Shown here: piece by piece, positions 33,075-50,205 of the stretch
Position numbering within the stretch: the first letter of the stretch is position 1
How the letters are laid out: every line of letters starts with the position of its first letter
Source: Paraphysomonas bandaiensis
Taxonomy: Eukaryota; Protista; Chrysophyceae
DNA: 64,000 nucleotides
Direction of reading: 5' to 3'
NCBI GenBank assembly: GCA_965644295.1
Contig: CBFFRP010000168.1
Coordinates: 1 to 64,000, forward strand
Notes under the pieces: model-generated
The model's input: only the letters and a program-made list of their open reading frames with translations
What the model was told of the DNA's origin: nothing
Database searches by the model: none
Program-made: the position numbers and the translations under genes

Positions 33075-35141
33075 ATGCTCTGCACACTACGACGTACTCG
33101 GACACTTTCTGCTAACACATCCAAGCTACTAGGATGTCGTTTATTGGCCTCTGATACCAAACCACCAACATCTACATCACATAAAAAGATGGAAACAGAT
33201 GCTCGATATAAACCCGTCAATGAAATACCAGAGTCTCTAAGAGATCCGAAGATGTCAGGTGTTATTCATTCTCCTGGATTTTCTATTAAAGGACAGGCTA
33301 AAGAGGGTCGTCCAGCATATCTTGATTTTCAGGCTACAACACCAATGGATCCCAGAGTACTTGACTCAATGCTACCTTATATGACGGGAAAGTATGATGA
33401 TATATATATATAGTGGCATTATTATTCACTATGGTTTAGATATGGAAATCCTCATTCAAGGACACATTCGTATGGATGGGAAACTGAACAGGCTGTTGAT
33501 GCAGCTCGTGAGGTACTGATATTCATTGTCATTTTCATGGATTAATGTATTGACAATACAGGAAATTGCTAAACTTATTGGCGCATCTGGAAAAGAAATC
33601 ATTTATACATCTGGAGCGACTGAGTCGAATAATATGGCTATTAAAGGAGTAGCTCGTTTCTATGGTGACGGCAGCGGCAAGAAGAACCATATCATTACCA
33701 CCCAAACGGAGCACAAATGTGTGTTAGATTCCTGCAGAGCAATGGAGGCCGAGGGATTTAAGGTGAAATCATAGTGAAAACACTGTTTTCGTGGTTAACA
33801 TGTCCGCGATATGTATTATGTTGACAGTGTGGTATAATGCCCCTCTCTTATTAATTCCATATTTGCAGGTCACCTACCTTCCTGTGCAGCAGAATGGTCT
33901 GATTGATATCGATGAGCTCAAAGCGGCTATCAGACCAGGAGAAACTATTCTTGTATCGGTGATGGGTGTAAACAATGAGATTGGGGTTGTTCAACCTCTC
34001 AAGGAGATTGGCAAGGTATGTGCATTTGTACAACCTTGTCTGTGCGTATCTGTATAGTACAGCTTTGGTCAGCATATAAAGTTTCTTCTCCCAATAACAT
34101 GTAAATTTACTCAGATTTGCCGTGAAAACAAAGTTTTTTTCCATTCTGATATCGCCCAGATGATTGGTAAGATGGAATTAGATGTCAATGATCTTAACAT
34201 TGATCTCGCATCGATATCATCTCATAAGGTAGGTTGCTATCGGCTTTTCACTGCTGTGATACCCTGTGAATATTGCTGTGGGTATATATGGATTTAGGGC
34301 GGCTATAGATGGTTAAGATAGTTGCTGAATATGTAGTACATATTTCGAAATTAACTTGATGTGACCGCTAGATCTACGGTCCCAAGGGTATCGGTGCTAT
34401 ATACATCCGCCGCAGACCTCGTGTGCGCATGGAGCCCATTATATCTGGCGGAGGACAGGAACGTGGCCTCCGAAGTGGAACCCTCTCCCCAGCCCTTTGT
34501 GTCGGACTTGGCACTGCAGCCAGGGTATGTAGAGAAGAGCTATCGAGGGACACTCAATGGGTCACGTATTTGTCAGATAAACTCAAAAAGTAGGAATTCA
34601 TTAGACACATATATGGAACTTGTGCTGATGGAATCCATGTTGTATGCAGAGGGATCGAAGAGAAGATACCTATGTCGATTTTGAATGGGGACCCCAAGAG
34701 CAGGTATCCTGGGAATGTTAACTACAGCTTCGCCTATGTTGAGGGTGAATCTCTTCTAATGGTACGTCGAATCCCTGTACATCCGTTGTCGCATCCTCTG
34801 AATATGTGTGCGTACAGTCATTGAAAAACCTAGCGGTTTCCTCGGGGTCAGCTTGCACATCTGCCTCACTTGAACCATCATATGTTCTTCGTGCGATCGG
34901 AGTGGATGATGAGATTGCCCACTCATCGATTCGTTTTGGCATTGGTATGATGCGTGTATATGTGCCAGCATTCGAACTCACTCTGTTTGTAGGTCGATTC
35001 ACAACGGAAGAAGAAATCGACTTTGCTCTTGACCTTCTAGAGAAGCATGTTACCAGGCTTCGCGAAATGTCACCCCTTTGGGAAATGGTACAGGAAGGAA
35101 TCGATCTCAAGTCAATCAAGTGGAGCCAAGATGCGCATTAG
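33075..35141 (+). CDS. NFS1: Mitochondrial cysteine desulfurase, multi-exon
   Basis: [40 protein letters not shown] (PLP Lys), [35 protein letters not shown]; N-terminal transit-like peptide. Confidence 0.97.
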
Positions 35142-35671
35142 AGAAGATGGTATCCCGCCTTGTTAGTTCATTCTTATTGATAAGTATCGCCAGTATCACT
35201 GGATTCTCAACAGGACGATATATCACATAGTTTCAATAAATGTATAATAATAAGCTCTATTCTGATCTATTGTACTGATATTTGAAGTGTCCTTCCTGTG
35301 TTCGTGGTTTGCACGTTGGTTAGTCCTAATTTATCCGCATCAGATTATTAAACGTTCTCTCTATAAAAAGATATGCTAATTAACATAATCACTGAGCTCT
35401 CTTATAAAAATAGGAATACAAAATATATTCCTGACTTGTTAAGTATGTCCTGACTCATACGTACAATGTAGTACGCTATGTTCTATGTTCGGTGCTCACA
35501 AAGGGCTAACATTCTTGCTTGAGAACAATAAGAGCTACTGTCAAGAACAATGAACTCTAGTATTATTACGGGCCTATTGGCTATATTTCAGTCACTATAT
35601 GCCCAAAGTACAATGCTCCCTATATGTATTGATTACTACTAATTACTATATACCATTGAAATGAAGATTGA

Positions 35672-36133
35672 CTACTTATCGGCCGAATTAGTGGGTTTCG
35701 ATTTCACTGAGGGGCATTTAATTTTTGACGCTGCACTACGAGGCATAAATCTCGAAATAATCTTCCGTGCCATATTTGCAAAGAATATATGGCGACCACT
35801 TAATGTTCCTATCGTTATCAAAATACAGGCGTATATGGGCGATATTATCAGTACACAAGCCGCACGATAAGAATTCGGTCCATCTATTAGAGTCCCTTCA
35901 ATACCCAATACATCCTTTAATGCAGGACGAACAAATGCAACACTAGATGAGCCAGTAATACCAAATACAGTAAATATTACAGCTGCTTCAGTGTAACTCT
36001 CTTTCCAAGATGGACGCTCCTGACATGTCCACTTCCAGAACCTTTGGAATGGATTGAGATTAGTGTTCGTGCCATTGGAACACCATCGGCGTATGGTATT
36101 AGGTGTGGAGCGAATAGCTGCACGGGTAAACAT
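35672..36133 (-). CDS. Small membrane protein (DUF6787-like), probable mitochondrial presequence
   Basis: VFGITGSSS, SPIYACILITIGTLSGRHIFF; Arg-rich N-terminus. Confidence 0.7.
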   Translation of the reverse strand: MFTRAAIRSTPNTIRRWCSNGTNTNLNPFQRFWKWTCQERPSWKESYTEAAVIFTVFGITGSSSVAFVRPALKDVLGIEGTLIDGPNSYRAACVLIISPIYACILITIGTLSGRHIFFANMARKIISRFMPRSAASKIKCPSVKSKPTNSADK

Positions 36134-36160
36134 CTTTGCAGTTAATTATGATGACTGGAC

Positions 36161-36409
36161 ATGTATGTATGTATGTATGTATGTATGTATGTATGTATGT
36201 ATGTATGTATGTATGTATGTATGTATGTATGTATGTATGTATGTATGTATGTATGTATGTATGTATGTATGTATGTCTGTATGCATGTATGTATGTATGT
36301 ATGTATGTATGTATGTATGTATGTATGTATGTATGTATGTATGTATGTATGTATGTATGTATGTATGTATGTATGTATGTATGTATGTATGTATGTATGT
36401 ATGTATGTA
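36161..36409. repeat. (TATG)n microsatellite
   Basis: Near-pure tract. Confidence 0.98.
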
Positions 36410-36496
36410 CATATGTATTAAAGGTATGGTCGGAATGTACATGTGCATATATATTTAAGAGATGTTATTCCACCCTATCTAACACCAATCCCTCTC

Positions 36497-39400
36497 ATGC
36501 CACGACATGAATCAAACGAAGACATTGGTGTTCACTTACTCAACGCATGTCGTTCATGGGATCGATATATCAATCTATTAAGTGAACACAAGTGTATCTA
36601 CAGCACATGCTCATCACACTCCTCTAGATGCTACTTAAAGAAAGTACTTGTTACATCATCTACTAAAAAACTTCCTATGGGGATTATAATGTATAGAAAA
36701 AGATTTGGTGCGGTTGTATTAGCATGTAAATCAACCTCATGGATCGCTCGGTTTACCCCATTAATTGGAGCACTCTTAATAGATGTGAATGGTGAAGTAG
36801 TGCTATTAGAGACATATCAATCGATTATGCAGAGGTAGAGACATTGTATATTGATTTCATTATGGGAACTTATTCTATGTAGGTTGGAGACTCTTCCTCG
36901 TCCATTATGTCTTCGATTTATTATACAAGAGAGTGTGATTGAGGTAGTGTGCTGGGAACGTGACTTGGGTGTGGTATGGGGACCGTGTAGTGATATAGCA
37001 CAAGCAGGAAATGTTACCAGGGGTGGGAGAGCGTGGAATGCAGGGGCTCGTGAGGGTGATGTAGTTGTATCCTTGCAAAAGCAGATCCTCTCTGCACGTA
37101 CTATGACACCAGAGGGATTGCGTGGCACTATCACAACAACCGCCGGCGGTGTACGAGTTATGTCTGTCGCTCGGCAAAGCTCTGCTGGATCGGTGCACCT
37201 GAATGCTCTATCTTATCGTGCTGTAAGGGATATAGGTTCATCCCAGCGACCGGGTGCGATCTTCTACTTTGTTGGACCTCGTTATGTGCTGCAGAGAGAA
37301 GAGGCAGGGTTGACTCCAACTCCTGTGCCCTCACGACCTGATCGTAATGCTTCTACAGACTCATTCTCTTCTTCTATGATGGACACATACACCAACAGAA
37401 CGGGTCCTCGAGTCAGATTTTCTGCCGTGCTCTCTGAGCGATCGGCAGGAGTGCCTGCTCCAGCTGCAGGAGATACTGATGCCCTCTTGTCTCGGTGGAA
37501 TCTTACGGATGCTCTATATCTATGTATGGCCGCTCTACCTGGTGCTGGCATTGCACGAGGGAATATATCGGAGAGTTGTTGTCGGTCGAACCACGTTATC
37601 TTCTTTTTACCACAGGTGGGAGTACTCTGATTATTCATCTTGCGTCTAACATTCCCTGCGACAGCTACTGGAAATCTTGCTTTGTCTGAGGTGCACAACA
37701 CAGGGGAAGCTAGAGGGTAAAGTAGCACCATTAAAGGGAGAGCTTGATCTGCTGACTGGTGGTGGTGAGCGAGCAGTCAAGTACTCTCAGCTTCTTCTAC
37801 CTGTAACTTGTAGAGATGTCGCCTCATGTCGCCAGTCGGCTTTTAATAGCAGTTCTACGAATAGCAGTTGTGAAAGTAAGAGCATTAGCCTGCCAGGGGC
37901 ATCAAAAATATCTGACTTTCTGAATGCTTGTCTGGATACCGACTTAACAGTATGCGCACTATTTTGGGCACTTCAGAGTCGTTTAACAGTGAATCCTGAG
38001 TCTGTTTTGACAGCAGAAAGAAATGACTCATGGGGAGTGCCATTTCCGTCGAACGCCTTCTGGATCCGACAGACAAGTGCCTCTTCTGTAAGCAGTTATG
38101 GCAGTGGGTCAAGGATGGATGACGGGGTGGGTGGGCTTTCCCCTGCCGGTAGTGTCACGGATTTAAGCTCAGAGGCACTATCAAGTGGGAATAGCCGACG
38201 GAAACTAGCAGGGAGCAGCCCTGCGAAGTCTAACGAGAGCTCAGCATTACTAGAGTTACTTATGCATCGGCTTGGGTGTACTTTGGCTCAACCATTGTCT
38301 GAAATGCAACAGAAATTTAACTCAGTGCAGCAGGAAAACAATGGAGTTAATGATATTGCTGGTTTACGTGTGTATGGCTCGTACAGACAATTCGAAGCAT
38401 TAGGCAGTGGAGGGGATAGTGTGTGGGGCTGTGGCTGGCGAGGGACTGGGTGCAATCGTTCAACAGTGTTAGATACACTACATCGCCAAACTAGACTGAT
38501 GGTGGTGGTACGGAAAGCAGCAACGGTAGTTCGGATGCCGTTATCGAACCCCAGTGCTGATACTAGAGAACATACGGAGGAAGACACTGAGGAGGCTGAC
38601 TTTTATGTAAGATCATCTGTTCGTAGGAATATGGCGCTAAGGACATCGCTACGGTCAGCCCTTTTTGTAGATACAACTCACCATAGTCGATCCCTCTTTC
38701 CTCTGCCTAATCCACTTTCTGTTTACACAGAATATTCCAGTTTTCATTCCATCGACATATCGAAGGTATATGACACAGTATATTACCATCCATACCTAAT
38801 GTTGTTCTAAATAGTGTCGCGTCCTGTCATCAGCGAATTATCCGCTTCTCCTTGCATTTAGGGAAGGCCCTTTGCCTTCTCCCTCGCGATTCCTTCTTTA
38901 CAAGGGAAGTGATGACTTACACCAGGACGCCCTCGTTGTGCAGATGTTCCGATACATGGACAGACTTCTTGTTGCGCACGGCGTAGACCTTCGTATGGAA
39001 TTATACTCCGTACTTCCGACTGGTCCGCAAGAAGGTCTCGTGGAGTGGATAGCTGATGCAACTCCGCTTGCTAAAGTGATAAAGAAGTATAGCAGAGATG
39101 AAAGGGGTACAGATGATGAACGGCATCGGGAAAAGAGGGAAGATTCAGAACGTAATAGAATGGGAGCTCCACAGGAGGGAAATGGGCGATTGACGTCCCT
39201 GTGTTCAGACGTGTGCGATAGTGTCATCGAGAAACATGCTCGAGCGTTCACGGAGAATACATGGCGCAGAGATGACAGTACTAACGTTGGAACATCTCAG
39301 ACGTGGAATTCAAATGATGCGGTTGCGCCAACCGAGATTACCCGTTTTTCTTGTATTCGGAATTTTCTGGCAGCAAAATCGAGCGATGTGGACTCTGCTA

Positions 39401-39909
39401 TGAGCAAATTCGTGAGTACATGTGCAGGAAATAGCGTGATGACTTTTGTACTGGGCGTGGGCGATAGACATCTAGACAATATTTTGCTTCTGCCGTCTGG
39501 TGCTGTCATGCATTGTGATTTTGGATACTGCTTCGGTAGAGATCCCGGGCATATGATATACAGCTCAAAGCTGAGGTTTACGAAGGAAATGTTAGAAGCA
39601 ATGGGCGGTGACAATTCTGTTTACTTTTCTAATTTCCAAACCTCGCTGGCATCTGCATACATCGTTCTTCGCCGCAACGCGTCGTTACTCTTTAATATGG
39701 TCCGGTCCATGGCGGATGCTGGTATATCTGATCTCAGTGTCAATCAATCAGTAGCCGAAACTCTGAGTGGATTAGAAGCAAGGCTACGCCTTGACCTCGA
39801 TGAGCAGGAAGCAGGTGGCTTTATAAAGTCACTTGCCAGAGAGAATGCCCGCTCGTTCATGCCAGTAATTATGGACAAAATGCACGAAATTGCCAGTTAT
39901 TTTCGATAA
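36497..39909 (+). CDS. PI3/PI4-kinase family protein with Vps34-like catalytic domain and atypical N-terminus, spliced
   Basis: YKGSDDLHQD, GLVEWI, LGVGDRHLDNILL, HCDFGYCFGRDP, LRLDLDEQEA; introns near 36835, 37617 and 38766. Confidence 0.8.
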
Positions 39910-40477
39910 AACATACAGTGATGAACATACTGTTATGAACTTTTACAGAAGTATTCACATTCCGCACAATACTATATACTATTTTTGTTATAAATCTTAC
40001 ATGTGTGTGTTATATTAAATATGTGTCTGATAAATATTAAATTTGTACTACGTACAGCTACATGTAGAATTCTGTTGTATCTATCATCATTAGCGTCGTT
40101 TGCAGAAAACTAGACTAGCGTGATATAGTTTTGTTCGACCGAAGCTGCCGAATGTTGCATGGGTTCCCGGCATAGTATATGACCAGGTTTTTGCGTAACA
40201 ATTAAATGTATTGCTAATTACTATCCTGAATTAATTCAATATATCATCTTACATCTTATGAAGTATGTATAGTTACTGATCATAGGTGCAAACCTCTTAT
40301 CTGTTAGCATAGAATCTTGGAGGTTGAGTTCTGAAATATAATGTGATATATAATATATATTGTGTAATTGAAGTGAGTTAATATAGTGTGCAATAGGTGA
40401 AGTCAACTCGTAGGTGAAACGGGAGATTATGGTTACAAAAAGGAATCAAATTCAGCTACTGATGTGTGACTATATAA

Positions 40478-40675
40478 CAGGGCTGCGTAACAATTAATTG
40501 CAATTAAACTGCAAATGTATTTTTGTTATTAAATTGCAATTATTAGCTATAGCTTGCGCAATCGGATACGATTTTGGCATTCTCTGCATTCCCATTTCTG
40601 ACGGCCATCATCAAAGTTCTCAAATTGGGTAAAAAACACCCTTGAAATGGATTCTGGTGTTAAGTTGTCAGACAT
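40478..40675 (-). mobile_element. hAT element end plus BED zinc-finger transposase remnant
   Basis: CAGGGCTGCGTAACAATTAATTG TIR at 40478 matches the right end of the 51678-52568 element; ORF remnant MSDNLTPESISRVFF..KWECRECQ. Confidence 0.65.
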
Positions 40676-41972
40676 TTCTAGTAAATGATACACACATATT
40701 GTAAATATTATGATTATATAAACGAGTATAATATACTGTATATTACATGACCAAAACTCTAAATATCCAGTATTTCGACTGCATAAAAAACAGAAAAAGT
40801 CCTGATAATCCATGTCCATACCGCTGCACATTACACTTGAATCCTGCAGTGTCTTGTATTGACAGTCCAGGATCGGTAAGAAGATGATTGCCACTCTTCG
40901 ATAAAAACACTCTTCCATATATGTTCTCTGCTACTGGCTAAGACTGCAAAAGAGCCGATTCCGACGCTTCTTCACAGTATATCAACAACTTTTGTAAGAC
41001 CTTCATCCGCATACCTCCGAGCCACTCTGCACAATGCCTAAGGGAAGGCCACCAGATCGCAAAACTCAGAAGGGTATATTTCTGCTTCCCCTGGTTTCCG
41101 TGAGGCACATAAGGCAGTCCCAGATGCAAACTGCACAAAATGTGAATGTAGTCTTATTAAGCGATCCAGTGTGGTAGTAGTTAACTTATAGGTCTTTGCT
41201 TTCACTTGTCATGCTGTACGTTGTACAACGTCCCTACATACACATCTATCATATAGCGAGAATGGTCGCACCTTGGTGCTTGGGGCGACGCACAAAAAGT
41301 TCTCATAGCTTTAAAAAGTAGGATACAAGAGTGTTTACACTAATTAGTAAATGGTATATGCTTATCAAGCTTGACTAGTTTTTAACTACTACTAATCTGG
41401 TGCTGATTTTTAACGCCGAATCTAATCTAATACTAAAAGTGTTCAACATCATCAGGATAAGCTACAATTTAACTTAGGGATAAGTAGTATCGTCCCTTGT
41501 CTAAATTTTAAAACTCGGGCTTTTCGCCCAGGCTTCAGAATTATAGCCTCCTTATTGCCTGTGGTTACATATATAACTATATTTGCGTCTACAAAAATGA
41601 TATTATAAACATAGCATTTTTCACTAAAGTACCACCTACTGCAGCTTGAAAATTGTCTCTCCACCAGCATTTAATTGCGCCCACCCTGATCCTTTCTTTT
41701 GCTTCAATAGTGGTTCCAAATCACAGCACCAACATTGCTTCAACGCAATTTAAACTACTATAATATTTCGAAGCCGTTGAATACTGCACTGACCTAATGC
41801 TATGCATTGCGACAATAGTTGTGGACGAGGTGTTCAGCATTGGACTTTTCACTGAAGTTGAATTATTAATCTAAACACTTCACTACATATTCATGTGGCA
41901 TCTGGTAAAACATTTGTACTCAGCAACATCTCTTTAACATATGTTCACCAGGCACTCCTACATCTTATATAG

Positions 41973-42092
41973 CAGGGCTGCGTAACAATTAATTGAATTG
42001 CAATTAAATTACATGGAACATACATAACAATCGCAATTATAATTGCTCGCTGGAAGGTTGCAATTAAATTGCAATTAATTGTTGGCAATTAT
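41973..42092 (+). mobile_element. hAT element left end
   Basis: Same TIR and subterminal sequence as 51678-51736. Confidence 0.7.
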
Positions 42093-42741
42093 TTACTATA
42101 TGTATTAGGACATATAATATTAGAATTAGAAGTTGGAAAACATTAAGGTCAATAGTCAATAGAGCCATTTATTGCCCTTGTAATGGCCATCGCACTTAAT
42201 GGCTATTATAACGGCTATTCAAATGGTGGGAAGAGGTTGTCCTCTCATTATATATATCTTTACATTAAGAGAAGTACCTTGTTCTTTGTACGGTCGATTA
42301 TGTGTCTTTACTCTTGACCTTGAGCATAAGTTCAGCTCGATCCATAGCGTATTACCCTTATATATCTATAAGTTATGTGATCGTCAAATGCAAGTATTTG
42401 TCAGGTGCTGATTTATGCACAAATGGGGATAAGTCCATATTATATCGTCTTAACCACACTCATTAACCACAGTCAGTAACCACACTTATATAAGAAGTAA
42501 TATATTTACGTCCAAATCAATTAAATTTATTGTATTACTCTACTAAATAGTACTATCAGAAAGTGTGCTTGCATACACAGGCAAATCATTTGCTAGAGTT
42601 TGACAATAACCAAAGTACTCAAAATCTTTGGAATCGACATTCATTATATGACGATATGCGTTGACAGGTGTTCTCTATTACACAATCAAACATAAACGAA
42701 TTATGCTTTCCCGCCTCACCCAAACGCCCATTGCCACCATC

Positions 42742-42825
42742 CCTGTGTGGTCATACCCTCTGTTTGATTTGCTTGTTGTATTTGTCATAGGCATAAAACA
42801 GCTTGTAATAGTCATCACGCACAGG
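42742..42825 (-). ncRNA. Candidate orphan box C/D snoRNA
   Basis: Terminal stem CCTGTG/CACAGG, box C GTGATGA, D' ATGA, D ATGA (variant); no rRNA guide recognised. Confidence 0.5.
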
Positions 42826-43870
42826 AATACATATAATGATGTCGAGGCCTTGGTTGTCAGCCTCGTGTACTTAATACTGTGTGTTGCTTCTCATCTTTCC
42901 TTTGAGCGTGCACAACTATTTGCTTCTTTCTTTTGTTCTATACCCATTCCATTTTCCCCACATATCTACTCCGCGCTGCACCAATCGTGTCAACGCAGGA
43001 ATTGCTTCGGATTAATAATCCCTCTAAGGATACTCTTAAACTTCAAGGAGACATCTTCAGAGTAGAGCTTGTCAAACATAAAGTTGGCAGTGAATGTTTC
43101 GGAAAATAGTATATGCCAAACGACGAAATCGTAGGATAATTTCTTCTGAAATCTTTTCGGTATTATTCCAGTCCTGAACACAGTGGACGGACCTTCTTCT
43201 GGACACCAGTAAACACGAATTGTTCGCCATAAATACGAACCCTAATAGCACGCATCTTGTTATATCTTACTCACAGTGAACAGCACAGAGTTTCCTCTGT
43301 TGAAAACGAGGTGCTCAAGATCTATATCTCGGGCTATTGTCGTGACAAGTGCAGGTGTAACAAACTAAAGAAATATGCTCAGGAGCTTAGCCTTTGCAGC
43401 TTTAACGTTGGATATTGACTGAGAAGGTCTGAATCTGGCAAATGAAACGATTCATGTCTCAAACCAATCCGCTTCCACTGTTTTAGAACCTTCTTCGACT
43501 CAGCCCCTATTTTGGCTTGTTGTGCAGCCTTCTCTATGCGCTCTTCAGTATTGAATCTGCTCTCCTTTGGAGACATCTTTAAGTATAAGAATGAGTCAAA
43601 TATAATAAAGTTACTTGCACATCATTTTGCCCTGTGATTGGGTCACTGGGAGTGCTGTCATATGAATTCACATACTTCGCTTGAGTCGAATCCGAGTTGA
43701 CTGTTACGTTTTTTCCGTACATAACAACAGTGTTTTTTGCTTTTTTGTGCTGTGATGGTGAGTATGGTTTAAACCAATAATAATGTGTATTACAGACAGT
43801 TGTTAAAGAAAATTTGTAGAGATTAAGTTTATTATCAGGCTATTTGAAGAGTTGATAGGTGTGTTCAATT

Positions 43871-43969
43871 CGGATCAGACAAATGCCTCGATGTCGCTCA
43901 TTTAGATTTGCCAAAGAGATGAATGGGCTCTTTGACAGTCGGCCTCGTCATCTTTAGTCATCACATCCG
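43871..43969 (-). ncRNA. Box C/D snoRNA, U15/SNORD15-like (copy 1)
   Basis: GTGATGA..AGATGACGAGG-CCGA..CGAGGCATTTGT-CTGA with terminal stem; both guides are antisense to conserved LSU CCAAAUGCCUCGUCAUCU. Confidence 0.88.
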
Positions 43970-44182
43970 TTTAACACTCTTATCAGAACACTTTACCCTA
44001 AATAGTCTAGTTGAAACCAAAGAATCTTCACAGAAGGATTTTTATTATTACATAGTATGTAACATTTTTGGCGACAGCTACTGCTTCATAGCAAAAGACC
44101 GATGCCAACTCCCACGTTGTCCTATGAAGTATAATGAGCAGATTATAAGCAGATATTCGACGTGTACAACGCTATTGAAAAA

Positions 44183-44265
44183 ATCCCTCAGTACAAGGAT
44201 GACAGGTTCAGTTCACTGACAAGAGTCTCATAGAGATTCCCAATGTCTTTCGTCATCATAGGGAT
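44183..44265 (-). ncRNA. Box C/D snoRNA, U79/SNORD79-like
   Basis: Stem ATCCC/GGGAT, ATGATGA, guide TGGGAATCTC-T-ATGA antisense to LSU GAGAUUCCCA, D box CTGA. Confidence 0.82.
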
Positions 44266-44282
44266 AAATATATTATGAAATA

Positions 44283-44372
44283 TACCAACAGGGTCAGTGT
44301 GTCTTAGATGGAATATATCGTCACAAAGATCAGGTGAACTATGCATTGACAAGGCCTCATTCCCCGTTGGTA
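44283..44372 (-). ncRNA. Box C/D snoRNA, U80/U77/snR60-like
   Basis: Long terminal stem TACCAAC.GGG, guide GCATAGTTCAC-CTGA antisense to LSU GUGAACUAUGC, C' GTGACGA, D CTGA; box C is degenerate (ATGAGGC). Confidence 0.65.
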
Positions 44373-44537
44373 CATATATATAATTTAATATATTGAAAAT
44401 GTATAACTTACATATACAGATGTCGGATTCTGGACTCAGATAAAGAGTAGTTCTCCGCCAACTTGTCTGAGATATAAAATGTAAAAATAATGTCTAGAAT
44501 AATATCTTTCGACGACGCGTGATAAGTGTGTTCAATT

Positions 44538-44636
44538 CGGATCAGACAAATGCCTCGATGTCGCTCATATAGATTTGCCAAGGAGATGAATGGGCTCCTT
44601 GACAGTCGGCCTCGTCATCTTTAGTCATCACGCCCG
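44538..44636 (-). ncRNA. Box C/D snoRNA, U15/SNORD15-like (copy 2)
   Basis: Paralog of 43871-43969 with a compensatory change in the internal stem. Confidence 0.88.
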
Positions 44637-44683
44637 AAACACACTTATCAATTCACGTCCAGGATGGGGAATTGAGGTATGAT

Positions 44684-44868
44684 TGTGATCAGATAGTTTG
44701 GATTTCTCCTCACTATATCCTGCCCTGACAGTCACACTCTCCACCCAACGGGGACTCCCAGCAAGTTCTGACGCTTTTCAGCGTAAAGAAACAAATGCAG
44801 GGCCGCAGAGTAAGAGGCAACGACAGAAACAAGAATCAGATTCTGAATCAGGGATCCTCATTTCACAG
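44684..44868 (-). ncRNA. Candidate long box C/D RNA
   Basis: TGTGA/TCACA terminal stem, ATGAGGA, internal GTGAGGA, terminal CTGA; D guide GAAATCCAAACTAT resembles antisense to SSU GUAGUUGGAUUUC with a bulge. Confidence 0.3.
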
Positions 44869-44990
44869 AACAACCTCCATTTATGCTTGATATTCGTATG
44901 AAACTCACCGATATGAATCTTCAAAAACCTCTGTTAAAAGTAGTTAGAAAAACAATTGGCACTTAATGGATTCAATATATAATGTATATG

Positions 44991-45066
44991 TGTATCAGAT
45001 ATTGAAATAGTCTCATAAGCACAAGGCTTCAGAAGGTGTCCTAAGGTAATTATCATATCATCACCA
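44991..45066 (-). ncRNA. Box C/D snoRNA, U58/SNORD58-like (copy 1)
   Basis: GTGATGA, guide CCTTAGGACACCT-T-CTGA antisense to LSU AGGUGUCCUAAGG, C' ATGAGA, D CTGA. Confidence 0.85.
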
Positions 45067-45236
45067 ACACAGGATAACTCTACTCAAACACACAATTCAA
45101 ATACTAACCTGGAGTCACCTTCAGAACCATAATTACGAATGCCTTGTTAGCAATACTGCATATTAATGAAATCAGAACATATATAACAAGCAGGGTATCT
45201 TTTAAAGGCATATACAGTACAACATAGGTGGTACAA

Positions 45237-45331
45237 TGAATCAGACGTGCTTCGTGATCCTGGCTTAGAATACAAAGCTAGATTTAGAAACATGGTCGAT
45301 CATACGGGGAAAGAGTCTGTCATCACATTCA
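45237..45331 (-). ncRNA. Box C/D snoRNA, SNORD12/snR190-like (copy 1)
   Basis: GTGATGA, guide TCTTTCCCCGT-ATGA antisense to LSU GCGGGGAAAGA, then TCGACCATGTT, D CTGA; TGAA/TTCA stem plus outer GGTGGTACA/TGTACCACC stem. Confidence 0.85.
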
Positions 45332-45372
45332 GGTGTACCACCACAGTACTAATAGTATAAATACATACAAAA

Positions 45373-45451
45373 GTGCATCAGATAAAGATATAGTCTCATA
45401 AGCATTTAGCTTCAGAAGGTGTCCTAAGGTAATTATCATATCATCACACAC
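45373..45451 (-). ncRNA. Box C/D snoRNA, U58/SNORD58-like (copy 2)
   Basis: Same boxes and D' guide as copy 1; D-proximal segment has diverged. Confidence 0.85.
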
Positions 45452-45622
45452 ACTCTAATTTCCATGGAAACAAGAATGGCATACTCACAATTGTCATCCG
45501 AAGACATCTTAATATGATTTGAAATTCACATGAAGGATTCAACTGTAGTAGCAACCTGTACATATATGTTATTATCAGAGCTTCATATGGGTTCAAATAG
45601 ACAATATGAGCACACAGGTATA

Positions 45623-45717
45623 TGAATCAGACGTGCTTCGTGATCCTGGCTTAGAATACAAAGCTACTTTTAGAAACATGGTCGATCATACGGGGAAAGA
45701 GTCTGTCATCACATTCA
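45623..45717 (-). ncRNA. Box C/D snoRNA, SNORD12/snR190-like (copy 2)
   Basis: As copy 1, with terminal stem ATATGAA/TTCATAT. Confidence 0.85.
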
Positions 45718-45892
45718 TATCTACCACTCATTCGTATACGTATATATAGAGAGAGGTGTCTGTCACGTACCCATATATTGAGAGGAGATCGCCCTCATCC
45801 AATGAAAGAATTACTTCCCATTAGATCCAAATCAATCCTGTAAAAAAGACTGTGAGAACAGGTGTCTATGAGTGTATATATATGGAGTAATG

Positions 45893-45991
45893 TGTTGGTC
45901 AGACATGCTTCATGATCCTGGCTTAGAATACGAAGCTAAGTATCGAAACATGGTCGATCATACGGGGAAAGAGTCTGTCATCATCCCAACA
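45893..45991 (-). ncRNA. Box C/D snoRNA, SNORD12/snR190-like (copy 3)
   Basis: ATGATGA..identical guide..CTGA; terminal stem TGTTGG/CCAACA is unrelated in sequence to the other copies' stems. Confidence 0.85.
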
Positions 45992-46219
45992 TTCAAACAT
46001 TGTATGTGTGATCTTACCTTATTGATTTCATTGGAATGTATGATGCTTCTAGTGAAGGTGTGAAATTATGAGATGGAGTGGAATGTTTCTATATGAGTGT
46101 ATGTAGTGTGTGTGGCTATGAGAGACCCCTTGATATCCACTACATATATATGGAGCTCTAAGGGACACGATGGAGTTCAGTTTAGTTCTATTTACTGTGT
46201 GCTGGTGATGGTGATGTAA

Positions 46220-46381
46220 GTATGTATGTATGTATGTATGTATGTATGTATGTATGTATGTATGTATGTATGTATGTATGTATGTATGTATGTATGTATG
46301 TATGTATGTATGTATGTATGTATGTATGTATGTATGTATGTATGTATGTATGTATGTATGTATGTATGTATGTATGTATGT
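46220..46381. repeat. (TATG)n microsatellite
   Basis: Pure tract. Confidence 0.98.
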
Positions 46382-46656
46382 GTGTACTCTGTATGTATGC
46401 ATGTCGGTATATAGGTATGTAGGTAGGTACAAATACACAAGTATCAATCTTACGAAATATTCCATCTTTCAACGGGTATATGTACAGTATGTATAGGGCA
46501 GCATATGGCCTCCCAGGTGTGTACCTGTGTACAAGGATCTCATCACATGACTGACCACACTCATATACACCCTCCATTAGCACCTACTGCACACATACCA
46601 CTATATTCCACTATATAAACCCTCCTAATAACTCTCTTATCATTCATAGCTGTTTT

Positions 46657-49600
46657 ATGCAGACAACAGCACCTAGTAGACAGTCCTCTGTGTCTGCACA
46701 AGCCTCTTATTCGGACTATGCACGAGCTTTTCGTCATGCATTACTTATACGTGGAAATGGCGATACAGGAGCCAAATCATACCTTAAATCAGTGTTTCGT
46801 GAGATTGATACAGATGGTAATGGGGAGTTAACAACCTCTGAACTCTTTACGTTTATACAGTCGATTGATATTAAGAATGAGATGCCTGAAGATGCCTTAG
46901 AAGGGATTGATACGGATCAGTTTGCAGAGATTTTAATACAACAGATTGATATTAATCATGATGGGAAAGTATCTTTTCGTGAGTTATCTGAATTTCTTTG
47001 GCCAGCTGTGGAATCTACACGTGAAGTTGGCATGGTTATTGAAGTTGTTCGCCAGGCTATAAAAGACTTCTTGGGCGATAGCCTCATTGCTCAAGCAGTG
47101 AAAAACAATTCTAATGATGATGCAACTCTTATATCCGCATTCGCGAAGAAAACAGGTGTAAAATTGTTACGGGGTAACCTCCTTGAAGTTCGGCAACTGA
47201 AAAAGGGTCTGAAGACTATTCAAAACAAAGAGCTTGGGTCACTAACGGACTACGAACTGGAGATGCTTGTCCACGCTATCGATGCTAATGGTGATAAAGT
47301 TATGTCTCCACGAGAATTCAAAACTTGGCTATTAATGCAACACGGAGAATACAGTAACACGCAACAGCAAACATCACGAAGTGAAGGGTGTCATGAGGAG
47401 AATGTAATGCATGCGGAAAACCGACACGAATCCGAGGAAGGAACAAGCTTACAGACTGACGCAGAAGCATCAGCTAGATTAAAGGCTGAGGAAGAAGCTC
47501 GTTTGAAAGCTGAAGCAGAAAAGGAAGCTCGTTTGAAGGCAGAAGAGGAAGCTCGATTAAAGGCTGAAGAGGAAGCTCGTTTGAAAGCTGAGGCTGAGGA
47601 AGTGGCTCGTTTGCAGGCTGAAGCAGAAGAGGCTGCAAGACTAAGAGCTGAGGAAGAAGCTCGTTTGAAAGCTGAAGCAGAAGAGGAAGCTAGATTAAAG
47701 GCTGAGGAAGAAGCTCGTTTGAAGGCCGAAGAGGAAGCACGATTGAAAGCTGAAGCAGAAGAGGCTGCAAGAGTAAAGGCTGAGGAAGAAGCTCGTTTGA
47801 AGGCCGAAGAGGAAGCTAGACTTAAGGCAGAAGAGGAAGCTCGATTAAAGGCTGAAGAGGAAGCTCGTTTGAAAGCTGAGGCTGAGGAAGCGGCTCGTTT
47901 GCAGGCTGAAGCAGAAGAGGCTGCAAGACTAAGAGCTGAGGAAGAAGCTCGTTTGAAAGCTGAAGCAGAAGAGGAAGCTCGATTAAAGGCTGAGGAAGAA
48001 GCTCGTTTGAAGGCCGCAGAGGAAGCACGATTGAAAGCTGAAGCAGAAGAGGCTGCAAGAGTAAAGGCTGAGGAAGAAGCTCGTTTGAAGGCCGAAGAGG
48101 AAGCTAGACTTAAGGCAGAAGAGGAAGCTCGATTAAAGGCTGAAGAGGAAGCTCGTTTGAAAGCTGAGGCTGAGGAAGCGGCTCGTTTGCAGGCTGAAGC
48201 AGAAGAGGCTGCAAGACTAAGAGCTGAGGAAGAAGCTCGTTTGAAAGCTGAAGCAGAAGAGGAAGCTAGATTAAAGGCTGAGGAAGAAGCTCGTTTGAAG
48301 GCCGAAGAGGAAGCACGATTGAAAGCTGAAGCAGAAGAGGCTGCAAGAGTAAAGGCTGAGGAAGAAGCTCGTTTGAAGGCCGAAGAGGAAGCTAGACTTA
48401 AGGCAGAAGAGGAAGCTCGATTAAAGGCTGAAGAGGAAGCTCGTTTGAAAGCTGAGGCTGAGGAAGCGGCTCGTTTGCAGGCTGAAGCAGAAGAGGCTGC
48501 AAGACTAAGAGCTGAGGAAGAAGCTCGTTTGAAAGCTGAAGCAGAAGAGGAAGCTCGATTAAAGGCTGAAGAGGAAGCTCGTTTGAAAGCTGAGGCTGAG
48601 GAAGCGGCTCGTTTGCAGGCTGAAGCAGAAGAGGCTGCAAGACTAAGAGCTGAGGAAGAAGCTCGTTTGAAAGCTGAAGCAGAAGAGGAAGCTAGATTAA
48701 AGGCTGAGGAAGAAGCTCGTTTGAAGGCCGAAGAGGAAGCACGATTGAAAGCTGAAGCAGAAGAGGCTGCAAGAGTAAAGGCTGAGGAAGAAGCTCGTTT
48801 GAAGGCCGAAGAGGAAGCTAGACTTAAGGCAGAAGAGGAAGCTCGATTAAAGGCTGAAGAGGAAGCTCGTTTGAAAGCTGAGGCTGAGGAAGCGGCTCGT
48901 TTGCAGGCTGAAGCAGAAGAGGCTGCAAGACTAAGAGCTGAGGAAGAAGCTCGTTTGAAAGCTGAAGCAGAAGAGGAAGCTCGATTAAAGGCTGAAGAGG
49001 AAGCTCGTTTGAAAGCTGAGGCTGAGGAAGCGGCTCGTTTGCAGGCTGAAGCAGAAGAGGCTGCAAGACTAAGAGCTGAGGAAGAAGCTCGTTTGAAAGC
49101 TGAAGCAGAAGAGGAAGCTCGATTAAAGGCTGAGGAGGAAGCTCGTTTGAAGGCCGAAGAGGAAGCACGATTGAAAGCTGAAGCAGAAGAGGCTGCAAGA
49201 GTAAAGGCTGAGGAAGAAGCTCGTTTGAAGGCCGAAGAGGAAGCTAGGCTTAAGGCAGAAGAGGAAGCTCGATTAAAGGCTGAAGAGGAAGCTCGTTTGA
49301 AAGCTGAGGCTGAGGAAGCGGCTCGTTTGCAGGCTGAAGCAGAAGAGGCTGCAAGACTAAGAGCTGAGGAAGAAGCTCGTTTGAAAGCTGAAGCAGAAGA
49401 GGAAGCTAGATTAAAGGCTGAGGAAGAAGCTCGTTTGAAGGCCGAAGAGGAAGCACGATTGCAAGCTGAAGCAGAAGAGGCTGCAAGAGTAAAGGCTGAG
49501 GAAGAAGCTCGTTTGAAGGCCGAAGAGGAAGCTAGACTTAAGGCAGAAGAGGAAGCTCGATTAAAGGCTGAGGAGGCGACTCGTTTGCAGGCTGAAGCAG

Positions 49601-50205
49601 AAGAGGCTGCAAGGCTAAGAGCCGAGGCAGAAGCTGCTAGATTGAAGGCTGAGACGGAGGCTCGGCTGAGGGCTCAAGAGGACGCTAGACTAAAGGCAGA
49701 AGCGGAAGCTGCTAGACGGAAGGCCGAGGCCGAAAAAGCTGCTAGACGTCAGGCTGAATCAGAAGAGGCAGCTAGATTAAAGGCTGAGGCCGAAGAATCG
49801 GCAAGACGAAAAGCAGAGGCAGCTCGGTTGATGGAAGCAGCAGAAGAGGCTGCTAAATTGAAGGCTGAAACCGGGGAGGCTGCTAGGTTGAAAGCTGATG
49901 TGGATGCAGAAGGAGCAGCAAGGGGGTCGTATGTTCCTCCTAGTGTTACCCCTTCTGGTGTGACTGTGGACTCAGTTAATGTTGAAATGGAAACATTTTC
50001 CTTGCTTCATACCAACGCCAGACCGCCAAAAGAGGAGAAGGTTGAAGGACGTTTTTCTTCGGCACCTGGGACACCTGACAAATTATTGGAACATTGGGAC
50101 GATGACAGTGATGGAAAGGCATTGTTGTCCCCGAGTAAGAGTAATTACTCAAAGCGAGAGAATCGAGATGAGGGGTGTTGTTGCTGTTGTTGCGGGTGGT
50201 GGTAG
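46657..50205 (+). CDS. EF-hand protein with a giant (AEEEARLK)n charged helical repeat and a Cys-string C-terminus
   Basis: EF loops DTDGNGELTTSE, DINHDGKVSFRE, DANGDKVMSPRE; about 780 aa of E/A/R/K repeats; ends CCCCCCGWW. Confidence 0.88.
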   Translation: MQTTAPSRQSSVSAQASYSDYARAFRHALLIRGNGDTGAKSYLKSVFREIDTDGNGELTTSELFTFIQSIDIKNEMPEDALEGIDTDQFAEILIQQIDINHDGKVSFRELSEFLWPAVESTREVGMVIEVVRQAIKDFLGDSLIAQAVKNNSNDDATLISAFAKKTGVKLLRGNLLEVRQLKKGLKTIQNKELGSLTDYELEMLVHAIDANGDKVMSPREFKTWLLMQHGEYSNTQQQTSRSEGCHEENVMHAENRHESEEGTSLQTDAEASARLKAEEEARLKAEAEKEARLKAEEEARLKAEEEARLKAEAEEVARLQAEAEEAARLRAEEEARLKAEAEEEARLKAEEEARLKAEEEARLKAEAEEAARVKAEEEARLKAEEEARLKAEEEARLKAEEEARLKAEAEEAARLQAEAEEAARLRAEEEARLKAEAEEEARLKAEEEARLKAAEEARLKAEAEEAARVKAEEEARLKAEEEARLKAEEEARLKAEEEARLKAEAEEAARLQAEAEEAARLRAEEEARLKAEAEEEARLKAEEEARLKAEEEARLKAEAEEAARVKAEEEARLKAEEEARLKAEEEARLKAEEEARLKAEAEEAARLQAEAEEAARLRAEEEARLKAEAEEEARLKAEEEARLKAEAEEAARLQAEAEEAARLRAEEEARLKAEAEEEARLKAEEEARLKAEEEARLKAEAEEAARVKAEEEARLKAEEEARLKAEEEARLKAEEEARLKAEAEEAARLQAEAEEAARLRAEEEARLKAEAEEEARLKAEEEARLKAEAEEAARLQAEAEEAARLRAEEEARLKAEAEEEARLKAEEEARLKAEEEARLKAEAEEAARVKAEEEARLKAEEEARLKAEEEARLKAEEEARLKAEAEEAARLQAEAEEAARLRAEEEARLKAEAEEEARLKAEEEARLKAEEEARLQAEAEEAARVKAEEEARLKAEEEARLKAEEEARLKAEEATRLQAEAEEAARLRAEAEAARLKAETEARLRAQEDARLKAEAEAARRKAEAEKAARRQAESEEAARLKAEAEESARRKAEAARLMEAAEEAAKLKAETGEAARLKADVDAEGAARGSYVPPSVTPSGVTVDSVNVEMETFSLLHTNARPPKEEKVEGRFSSAPGTPDKLLEHWDDDSDGKALLSPSKSNYSKRENRDEGCCCCCCGWW
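47470..49800 (+). repeat. Coding minisatellite of 24/30-bp units with 288/426-bp higher-order period
   Basis: Marker CTTAAGGCAG at 47821, 48109, 48397, 48823, 49249 and 49537. Confidence 0.92.

Follow-up and report, generated by a model that had tools for sequence, protein, structure and literature searches.

Evidence for a spliced, non-coding host gene of box C/D small nucleolar RNAs in the chrysophyte Paraphysomonas bandaiensis

Results and Discussion

The locus and its spliced transcript

We analyzed a stretch of 64,000 nucleotides (nt) from the marine protist Paraphysomonas bandaiensis (assembly GCA_965644295.1, contig CBFFRP010000168.1, positions 1 to 64,000 of the forward strand; hereafter, the window), for which a sequence-only reading had proposed a non-coding gene hosting small nucleolar RNAs (snoRNAs) in its introns. 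The locus runs on the minus strand from about 46.0 kb to about 43.8 kb and holds, within 43870-45990, nine minus-strand box C/D units of five guide families, plus one long orphan candidate. A genome search found it, introns included, in a single copy. It is very probably a spliced, non-coding host gene transcribed by RNA polymerase II, and we hold with comparable confidence that small nucleolar RNA is its only evident product.

Contigs from four public RNA runs, belonging to four studies, were placed on positions 41200-46215. Two of the runs are marine metatranscriptomes, one random-primed and one poly(A)-selected, and the other two are organism-labelled. The same five minus-strand introns, with the same joints, were found in all four runs: 45770-45556, 45488-45156, 45108-44931, 44908-44467 and 44411-44122. 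The ends of the skipped stretches read CT..AC on the plus strand, that is, GT..AG on the minus strand, and the locus contigs carry 0 mismatches. The donors read GUACGU, GUGAGU, GUUAGU, GUGAGU and GUAAGU, and the acceptors are preceded by pyrimidine-rich tracts. As the single genomic copy contains the introns, the spliced form is not a retro-copy or other DNA copy; moreover, the stretches of zero depth at 41704-41871 and 46072-46215 indicate that the runs represent RNA and not DNA. The spliced form is present in the poly(A)-selected library, while unspliced contigs occur in all runs.

Four minus-strand exons have both joints in the four runs, namely those of 67 nt (45489-45555), 47 nt (45109-45155), 22 nt (44909-44930) and 55 nt (44412-44466). 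Upstream of them lies another 67-nt exon (45771-45837, minus strand), whose 3' end is verified by the joint 45555/45771 in four runs and whose 5' end, at an acceptor at 45838, is predicted. The core of the sequence-only reading, a spliced and apparently non-coding minus-strand host with rRNA-methylation guides standing singly or in pairs in its introns, is therefore borne out by five introns in RNA contigs. Joints of a minus-strand spliced transcript are present in the contigs of the four runs, and the proposed chain of 22-67-nt exons is matched by the GT..AG introns, the one at 45156-45488 exactly.

The RNA lacks coding capacity: when the exons are joined, the longest open reading frame (ORF) has 25 amino acids (aa), and three ORFs of 24-25 aa are present. 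The statement that the region contains no credible long ORF holds as well, since none of at least 100 aa was found on either strand and the ORFs of at least 50 aa in the locus have no Pfam match. As had been noticed, one exon (45837-45771) carries stops in all three frames. Comparisons of the exons with each other, with the snoRNAs and with anything else tested gave no similarity. An equal spacing of about 385 nt between paralogues had suggested that the exons might be decayed snoRNA copies, an idea rejected as no exon resembles any unit.

The box C/D units

Two of the verified introns hold one unit each (Z103-like copy b; U58-like copy b), and three hold two, in the order U58-like copy a and Z103-like copy c (45488-45156), long orphan and U15-like copy a (44908-44467), and snR60-like and U79-like (44411-44122). 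This agrees with the earlier proposal of introns with one snoRNA and others with two. The further proposal that the units lie strictly between exons stands for seven of the nine, plus the orphan, which are inside verified introns, and does not stand for Z103-like copy a and U15-like copy b, which are outside. From the D box of the last unit to the 3' splice site, the five introns measure 71, 85, 64, 75 and 66 nt, and from the 5' splice site to the C box of the first unit 58, 41, 44, 47 and 51 nt. Such spacing falls in the range of splicing-coupled assembly of intronic C/D small nucleolar ribonucleoproteins (snoRNPs).

Following the direction of transcription, the first unit is Z103/SNORD12/snR190-like copy a (45894-45990, as all units on the minus strand), with Rfam scores of 29.9 bits for snoZ103 and 24.6 bits for SNORD12, both below the gathering score. 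Its C box AUGAUGA is at 45984-45978 and its D box CUGA at 45902-45899, and the unit as a whole lies ahead of the first verified exon, within an unverified intron 1 or a 5' leader. Copy b (45622-45718; snoZ103, 33.3 bits, E 7e-4) occupies intron 45770-45556 and is 95% identical to copy c (45236-45332; snoZ103, 28.3 bits), which has a long outer stem GGUGGUACA/UGUACCACC and a fold that closes its ends (z = -3.27). Copy a has the terminal stem GUUGG/CCAAC; in copies b and c this stem reads AUGAAU/AUUCAU, a compensatory difference.

The U58/Z27/Me28S-Gm3113-like copy a (45373-45454) scores 32.4 bits for snoMe28S-Gm3113 and 31.9 bits for snoR31_Z110_Z27, and copy b (44990-45071; intron 45108-44931) scores 34.5 bits for snoMe28S-Gm3113. 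The two are 88% identical, and their terminal stems again differ in a compensatory manner (AGUG/CACU versus UGUG/CACA). Next comes the long orphan C/D-like candidate of about 175 nt (44686-44866). Its C box is AUGAGGA (44861-44855) and its D box CUGA (44692-44689), the ends form the terminal stem UGUGA/UCACA, and a large hairpin lies inside. Its fold closes the ends (z = -2.46) and RNA contigs cover it, and the Rfam search gave no match for it at E<5. U15/SNOR75-like copy a (44537-44636; SNOR75, 25.6 bits) has a 12-bp outer stem and two guides, both of which align to the SNOR75 family consensus.

The snR60/Z15/U80-like unit (44286-44369; snosnR60_Z15, 28.8 bits, gathering score 41) combines a weak C box, AUGAGGC, with a terminal stem of 12 bp. 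Beside it, the U79-like unit (44183-44265; snoR11, 31.7 bits; snoR44_J54, 17.6 bits) has a snoR11-like scaffold with a guide like those of snoR44/J54 and SNORD79. Going by its guide, this unit is the U79 equivalent even with snoR11 as its best Rfam scaffold, and the weak snoR44_J54 match there belongs to the SNORD79 clan. The last unit, U15/SNOR75-like copy b (43870-43969; SNOR75, 27.5 bits; SNORD15, 22.1 bits), is downstream of the last verified acceptor, in a terminal exon or 3' region. The two U15-like copies share 92% identity, and a pair of their internal hairpin changes from G-C to A-U in a compensatory manner.

A candidate for an eleventh unit at about 44060-43985 (GUGAAGA...CUGA) has a weak stem, its only rRNA match has a G-U at the target position, and its fold (on a segment that ended just before the D box) is no better than those of shuffles; it was left uncounted.

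In the permissive mode of Rfam, nine minus-strand C/D matches fall in 43870-45990, and the plus strand has nothing comparable. The earlier proposal of at least nine units is thereby borne out, with 9 of 9 recovered as sub-threshold matches, so that the covariance models give each unit a match and none a score at gathering level: the best score per unit is 25-34.5 bits, against gathering scores of 41-75. A simple scan for RUGAUGA, a CUGA 50-125 nt later and a flanking stem of at least 4 bp gave eight matches in the 2.2 kb of the locus, compared with two in the other 126 kb (both strands of the window). In eight units, RUGAUGA and CUGA are exact and the stem reaches at least 4 bp, and the C box is degenerate in the snR60-like and the long unit. 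In their minimum free energy folds, 8 of the 9 units have closed ends, or 9 of 10 when the long orphan is counted. Moreover, a repeat finder recovered the paralogues as sets of three, two and two, and in alignments these are nearly identical between their C and D boxes and lose this identity immediately beyond them.

The guide blocks can be aligned with the consensus sequences of their families (UUUCCCC..AUGAUCGAC, ACCUUAGGACACCU, GAUGACGAG.CCGA, CGAGGCAUUUGUCUGA and GCAUAGUUCA.CUGA). Judged by guide and target, the units are best regarded as functional equivalents of the named families and not as formal Rfam members. A metagenome search with the conserved Z103 block, in which 80 of 118 matching stretches were listed, returned five snoRNA-like stretches, all apparently plant-type Z103, and no close relative of the present locus among the matches listed. 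These Z103-type units (three in L082, two in L057, and those of L080, L097 and L100) carry UUUCCCC..AUGAUCGAC directly after the C box, and two of the contigs have tandem copies. The contigs are probably plant DNA in environmental samples, and the comparison shows that conservation of the AUGAUCGAC extension, which follows the guide for the G2395 site, reaches well outside this organism.

Guides and their targets in the large subunit rRNA

The assembly (62.6 Mb, 669 contigs) holds the ribosomal DNA (rDNA) as fragments, and pieces were gathered by pattern and 5.8S searches, yielding a complete small subunit rRNA, 5.8S and several partial, internally deleted pieces of the large subunit (LSU) rRNA. 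The only long LSU fragment of the assembly (L007; G000:C545:1-2110, minus strand) has internal deletions, and other rDNA pieces (C516, C525, C528, C438, C188, C653 and C68) are truncated or rearranged. At positions 305-636 of the LSU-like piece L007, a segment of about 320 nt has matches of 77-81% identity on many contigs, in hundreds of tandem copies with a spacing of about 174 nt.

Guides were compared with a 6.6-kb rDNA pool and with 300 shuffles, under the rule that the helix begins within 0-2 nt of box D or D' and includes the fifth position. By this +5 rule, six guides from the five families pair with the LSU rRNA of the organism itself through 10-14 Watson-Crick pairs, with 0-23 of 300 shuffles doing as well. 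The condition named in advance as refuting the proposal, guides not complementary to this organism's rRNA, was thus examined and complementarity was found.

In the target sequences below, an asterisk follows the predicted target base. The U58/Z27-like D' guide, directly before the D' box CUGA, forms a perfect 14-bp helix with LSU AGGUGUCCUAAGGU (target AGGU*GUCCUAAGGU, i.e., AGGU*GUCC; shuffles 0/300), with a one-nucleotide ambiguity of register (U or the next G). The U15-like unit pairs at both of its boxes, through 11 bp at D' (CCGA; target CCUCG*UCAU; shuffles 5/300) and 11 bp at D (CUGA; target CCAAA*UGCC; shuffles 7/300). For the snR60-like D' guide, 11 bp form with LSU GGUGAACUAUGC (target GGUGAA*CUAUGC; shuffles 4/300). 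The U79-like D' guide (AUGA) pairs through 10 bp, or 14 of 15 positions when extended by hand, with LSU GAGAUUCCCACUGUC (target GAGA*UUCCC; shuffles 11/300), and the Z103-like D' guide (AUGA) through 11 bp (target GCGGG*GAAAGA; shuffles 23/300).

On the C545 fragment, four predicted sites fall at 1448, 1455, 1493 and 1562, that is, 7, 45 and 114 nt from the first. This spacing equals what we take to be that of yeast A2281, G2288 and G2395 and of human A3764, A3809 and G3878. All five target assignments made in the sequence-only reading (U15, SNORD12/snR190, U58, U79 and U80/snR60) fit the rRNA fragments of this organism. Based on these pairings, the mature RNAs would guide fibrillarin to the equivalents of yeast A2281 and G2288 (U15-like), human A3809 (U79-like) and yeast A817 (snR60/U80-like), and the site of the U58/Z27-like guide would be the equivalent of the human U4197/G4198 region. 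The pairings have independent support in two papers: U15 has been matched with snR75, and the site of snR13 is 8 nt away (PMC2780460), while the target of box A of snR190 is G2395 in helix H73 (PMC8536666). The Z103/snR190-like RNAs are predicted to pair at this G2395 site. Yeast snR190 does not direct methylation of G2395 and serves as a placeholder or assembly chaperone in pre-60S assembly (PMC8536666); the copies described here may act in either role, as guide or as chaperone.

A search for a second, snR190-type antisense box in the Z103-like units gave no convincing complement in the available pieces of LSU domain I. The D-box guide region of the U58-like units differs between the copies, and a working guide is therefore improbable there. 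For the D guide of the long unit, a target search over the whole genome gave matches at the level of controls and none in rDNA contigs.

The two ends of the host gene and its surroundings

A first intron had been placed at 46017-45838, and this proposal was not confirmed: no joint for it was found in the four runs, in which 45975-46215 has no contig at all. On the evidence of splice-site sequence, the putative intron 1 (45838-46017, minus strand) would have a good donor, AAG/GUAAGA, and the acceptor UUUUUUACAG/G (slashes marking the joints). The distances of Z103-like copy a to the splice sites would then be 33 nt (5') and 61 nt (3'), which agrees with the spacing in the verified introns. Three of the four runs have a contig that extends unspliced from exon 45837-45771 up to 45974, inside Z103-like copy a, where the Z103 repeat breaks the assembly, and in two of these three the same contig goes on into the exons spliced downstream. 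For the poly(A) run, a contig end at about 45839 follows from depth arithmetic (9.16 over a 168-nt bin at a contig depth of 21.7, hence 71 nt). This position corresponds to the predicted acceptor plus the two letters AG, with which the predicted exon 1 also ends. At that point the poly(A) run has no sequence of intron 1, though the other introns are represented. Such an end fits either a real intron with a first exon too short for assembly or placement or a 5' end at this place, and we give the reality of intron 1 about even odds.

Beyond the 5' end, the host and a large ORF face each other head to head across a (CATA)n/(TATG)n microsatellite at 46222-46425, and they may share a divergent promoter, as the sequence-only reading proposed. 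The ORF (46657-50205) is an open frame of 1182 aa that starts in an EF-hand-like manner, continues for hundreds of residues with AEEEARLK-type repeats that are almost perfect, and has a C-terminus with a cysteine run. In the permissive mode of Rfam, the microsatellite gives spurious matches to mir-297, mir-3149, mir-4012 and mir-1277; the mir-297 matches were rejected, being the (CATA)n repeat itself.

At the other end, contigs of all four runs lead from the spliced junction 44121/44412 unbroken through 44121-43935 and stop at 43935, within the duplicated sequence of U15-like copy b, so that the terminal exon extends at least over 43935-44121 (minus strand). The sequence-only reading had drawn the last intron as 43701-44411, which proved wrong. 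The acceptor in use is 44122, which places the last U15-like copy in the terminal exon, and position 43701 is inside a dispersed repeat. AATAAA signals start at 44046 and 43833. The second (AAUAAA, 43828-43833, minus strand) follows the last snoRNA unit by about 37 nt and precedes the dispersed repeat by 58 nt, and it probably serves the host as poly(A) signal. The host most likely ends between 43870 and 43771, probably near 43810.

The dispersed repeat (42447-43770, about 1.33 kb) has at least 40 copies in the genome with about 92% identity (range 80-94%), and no terminal inverted or direct repeats were found in it. It carries a 65-aa ORF (43576-43379) without a Pfam family. Other copies of this repeat contribute heavily to two RNA runs, where contig depths range from hundreds to thousands. 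The contigs over the repeat at the locus are only 90-95% alike and have loose ends at its borders (43763 and 42447), and so they derive from other copies. Further downstream, at 41200-41367, 26 contigs of two RNA runs reach a summed depth of about 35,000-41,000, which suggests a very abundant or multi-copy transcribed element; no tRNA or Rfam family falls there.

Biogenesis and alternative explanations

Processing of the snoRNAs, assembly of snoRNPs and methylation directed by them are what we infer for this gene. The primary transcript would be spliced, and the introns would be debranched and trimmed by exonucleases to the snoRNP cores, which would form on the C/D kink-turns and terminal stems. 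As a class, box C/D snoRNAs accumulate as discrete small RNAs in complex with fibrillarin, Nop56, Nop58 and Snu13. The regular spacing to the splice sites would point to snoRNP assembly coupled to splicing. For the three two-unit introns, an additional endonucleolytic cut in the spacer would be needed. Each of them has at least one member with an outer stem of 12-14 bp (Z103-like copy c, U15-like copy a and the snR60-like unit), and these stems may aid the cut. The two units outside the verified introns would need another origin, Z103-like copy a in an intron or leader on the 5' side and U15-like copy b in a terminal exon or the 3' flank.

The same features may be read as a polycistronic precursor of the plant or yeast type, released by endo- and exonucleases, in which splicing would be incidental. 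The three introns with two units, the position of the first and last units outside verified introns, the unspliced contigs in all runs and the long outer stems on several units, of the kind cut by RNase III-type enzymes, would all suit such a precursor. However, none of the five efficient canonical introns is without a unit, the last unit in each lies 64-85 nt ahead of the 3' splice site, which would be unexpectedly regular if splicing were irrelevant, and poly(A)-selected RNA contains the spliced exons, so that we regard this explanation as very unlikely. The short exons might instead form the 5' untranslated region of a coding gene downstream on the minus strand, for example the ATG-initiated 65-aa ORF that follows about 300 nt after the last unit on the same strand and is overlain by contigs in two runs. 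We rejected this explanation as exceedingly improbable; it is largely refuted by the membership of the ORF in the dispersed repeat, whose other copies account for those contigs, and by the lack of any joint to the host exons. In addition, the two metatranscriptome runs have zero depth at 43552-43887, and no Pfam family matches the ORF.

The spliced poly(A) RNA might also have a function of its own, either as a regulatory long non-coding RNA (lncRNA), as reported for GAS5, or through a micropeptide of at most 25 aa. It is stable enough to be assembled in four runs, the poly(A) library included, and the joined model offers the three small ORFs mentioned above, but its exons resemble nothing that was tested and one of them is closed by stops in all frames, which makes such a function highly unlikely in our view. 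Less remote, though still doubtful, is the possibility that some of the units (U15-like copy b, the snR60-like unit and the long orphan) are decaying duplicates. U15-like copy b has two mismatches in an outer stem that is perfect in copy a, and lies outside an intron; the C box of the snR60-like unit departs from RUGAUGA at two positions; and the long unit has no target. Nevertheless, U15-like copy b keeps all its boxes, both guides and a compensatory pair change, the snR60-like unit keeps a conserved guide and its 12-bp stem, and the genome search gave no second copy of the locus. Finally, the two terminal units could be non-intronic and mark the ends of a stable RNA, either with a 5' end protected by a Z103/snR190-like snoRNP and a spliced and polyadenylated body, or with a terminal exon ending in a U15-like snoRNP. 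This arrangement, which resembles the 5'-snoRNA-capped, 3'-polyadenylated (SPA) lncRNAs of the human Prader-Willi region, seems unlikely to us; if true, it would mean that RNAs of the SPA or sno-lncRNA type exist in a free-living protist, with housekeeping guides.

Several observations weigh against the interpretation as a snoRNA host gene, or limit its reach. At gathering thresholds, Rfam gives 0 matches in the whole 64-kb window, and consequently no unit attains its family's gathering score, and the C box of the snR60-like unit is poor. The RNA evidence consists of assembled contigs only, which show that the units are transcribed but reveal neither mature RNAs of 70-180 nt nor transcript ends, and their strand is given only by the splice dinucleotides; the 5' exon and the 3' end of the host are unmapped. 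Moreover, no convincing target was found in the rDNA pool for the D-box guides of the Z103-, U58- and snR60-like units or for both guides of the long unit. The assembly contains the LSU rRNA incompletely and in scrambled pieces, and a missing target for some guides is for this reason weak evidence.

Comparison with known host genes and significance

The snoRNA host gene described here resembles UHG/SNHG1, GAS5 and Drosophila dUHG, all of which produce a spliced, polyadenylated RNA with short exons and no meaningful ORF, with guides in successive introns. As in the vertebrate and dUHG hosts, the C/D guides lie about 60-85 nt from the 3' splice site. Unlike in those hosts, where one snoRNA per intron is the rule, three of the five verified introns hold two. 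U79- and U80-type guides share one gene here, as they presumably do in GAS5, which may reflect ancient linkage or coincidence, as the sequence-only reading suggested; their order, U80-like and then U79-like within one intron, is unlike what we take to be the arrangement in GAS5. A 5'TOP start is typical of animal snoRNA hosts, and UHG-like hosts are further characterized by a spliced RNA that nonsense-mediated decay (NMD) turns over rapidly. Homology to the exons of animal hosts was neither expected nor seen.

The UHG-like C/D clusters of Neurospora crassa are likewise non-coding, with short ORFs only and canonical introns around each snoRNA, and one of them, which mixes intronic units with the exon-encoded CD6, is the closest parallel to U15-like copy b in the terminal exon (PMC2780460). 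The Neurospora clusters differ in their set of snoRNAs and their fungal lineage, and the alternative splicing demonstrated by reverse transcription PCR is a finding on Neurospora (PMC2780460). The intronic clusters of rice, Chlamydomonas and Ostreococcus share with the present locus several snoRNAs per intron, which are separated by endonucleolytic cuts, and paralogues within a cluster (PMC7671301), and the best Rfam matches here are to plant families (Z103, Z27, SNOR75, Z15 and R11). However, plant and algal intronic clusters are mostly found in protein-coding hosts or as independent units (PMC7671301), whereas the host here is non-coding and one- and two-unit introns alternate.

The layout as such is already known from animals, fungi, plants and green algae, and it introduces no new principle. 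What is described here is a single-copy, dedicated non-coding host with five or six different guide families, in which introns with one and with two units alternate, in a marine, probably stramenopile protist. Gene finders leave such loci blank or fill them with spurious ORFs, and the predicted methylation sites are directly open to RiboMeth-seq. For this genome, the finding provides an expression-backed annotation of its only copies of five conserved LSU guide families, the targets of which all belong to the functional core of the LSU, comprising the H69-H71 region, H73, the area 3' of the P-loop sequence CUGGGGCGG and the A817-equivalent site. Overall, the locus adds a data point on how strategies of snoRNA expression have evolved outside animals, fungi and green plants.

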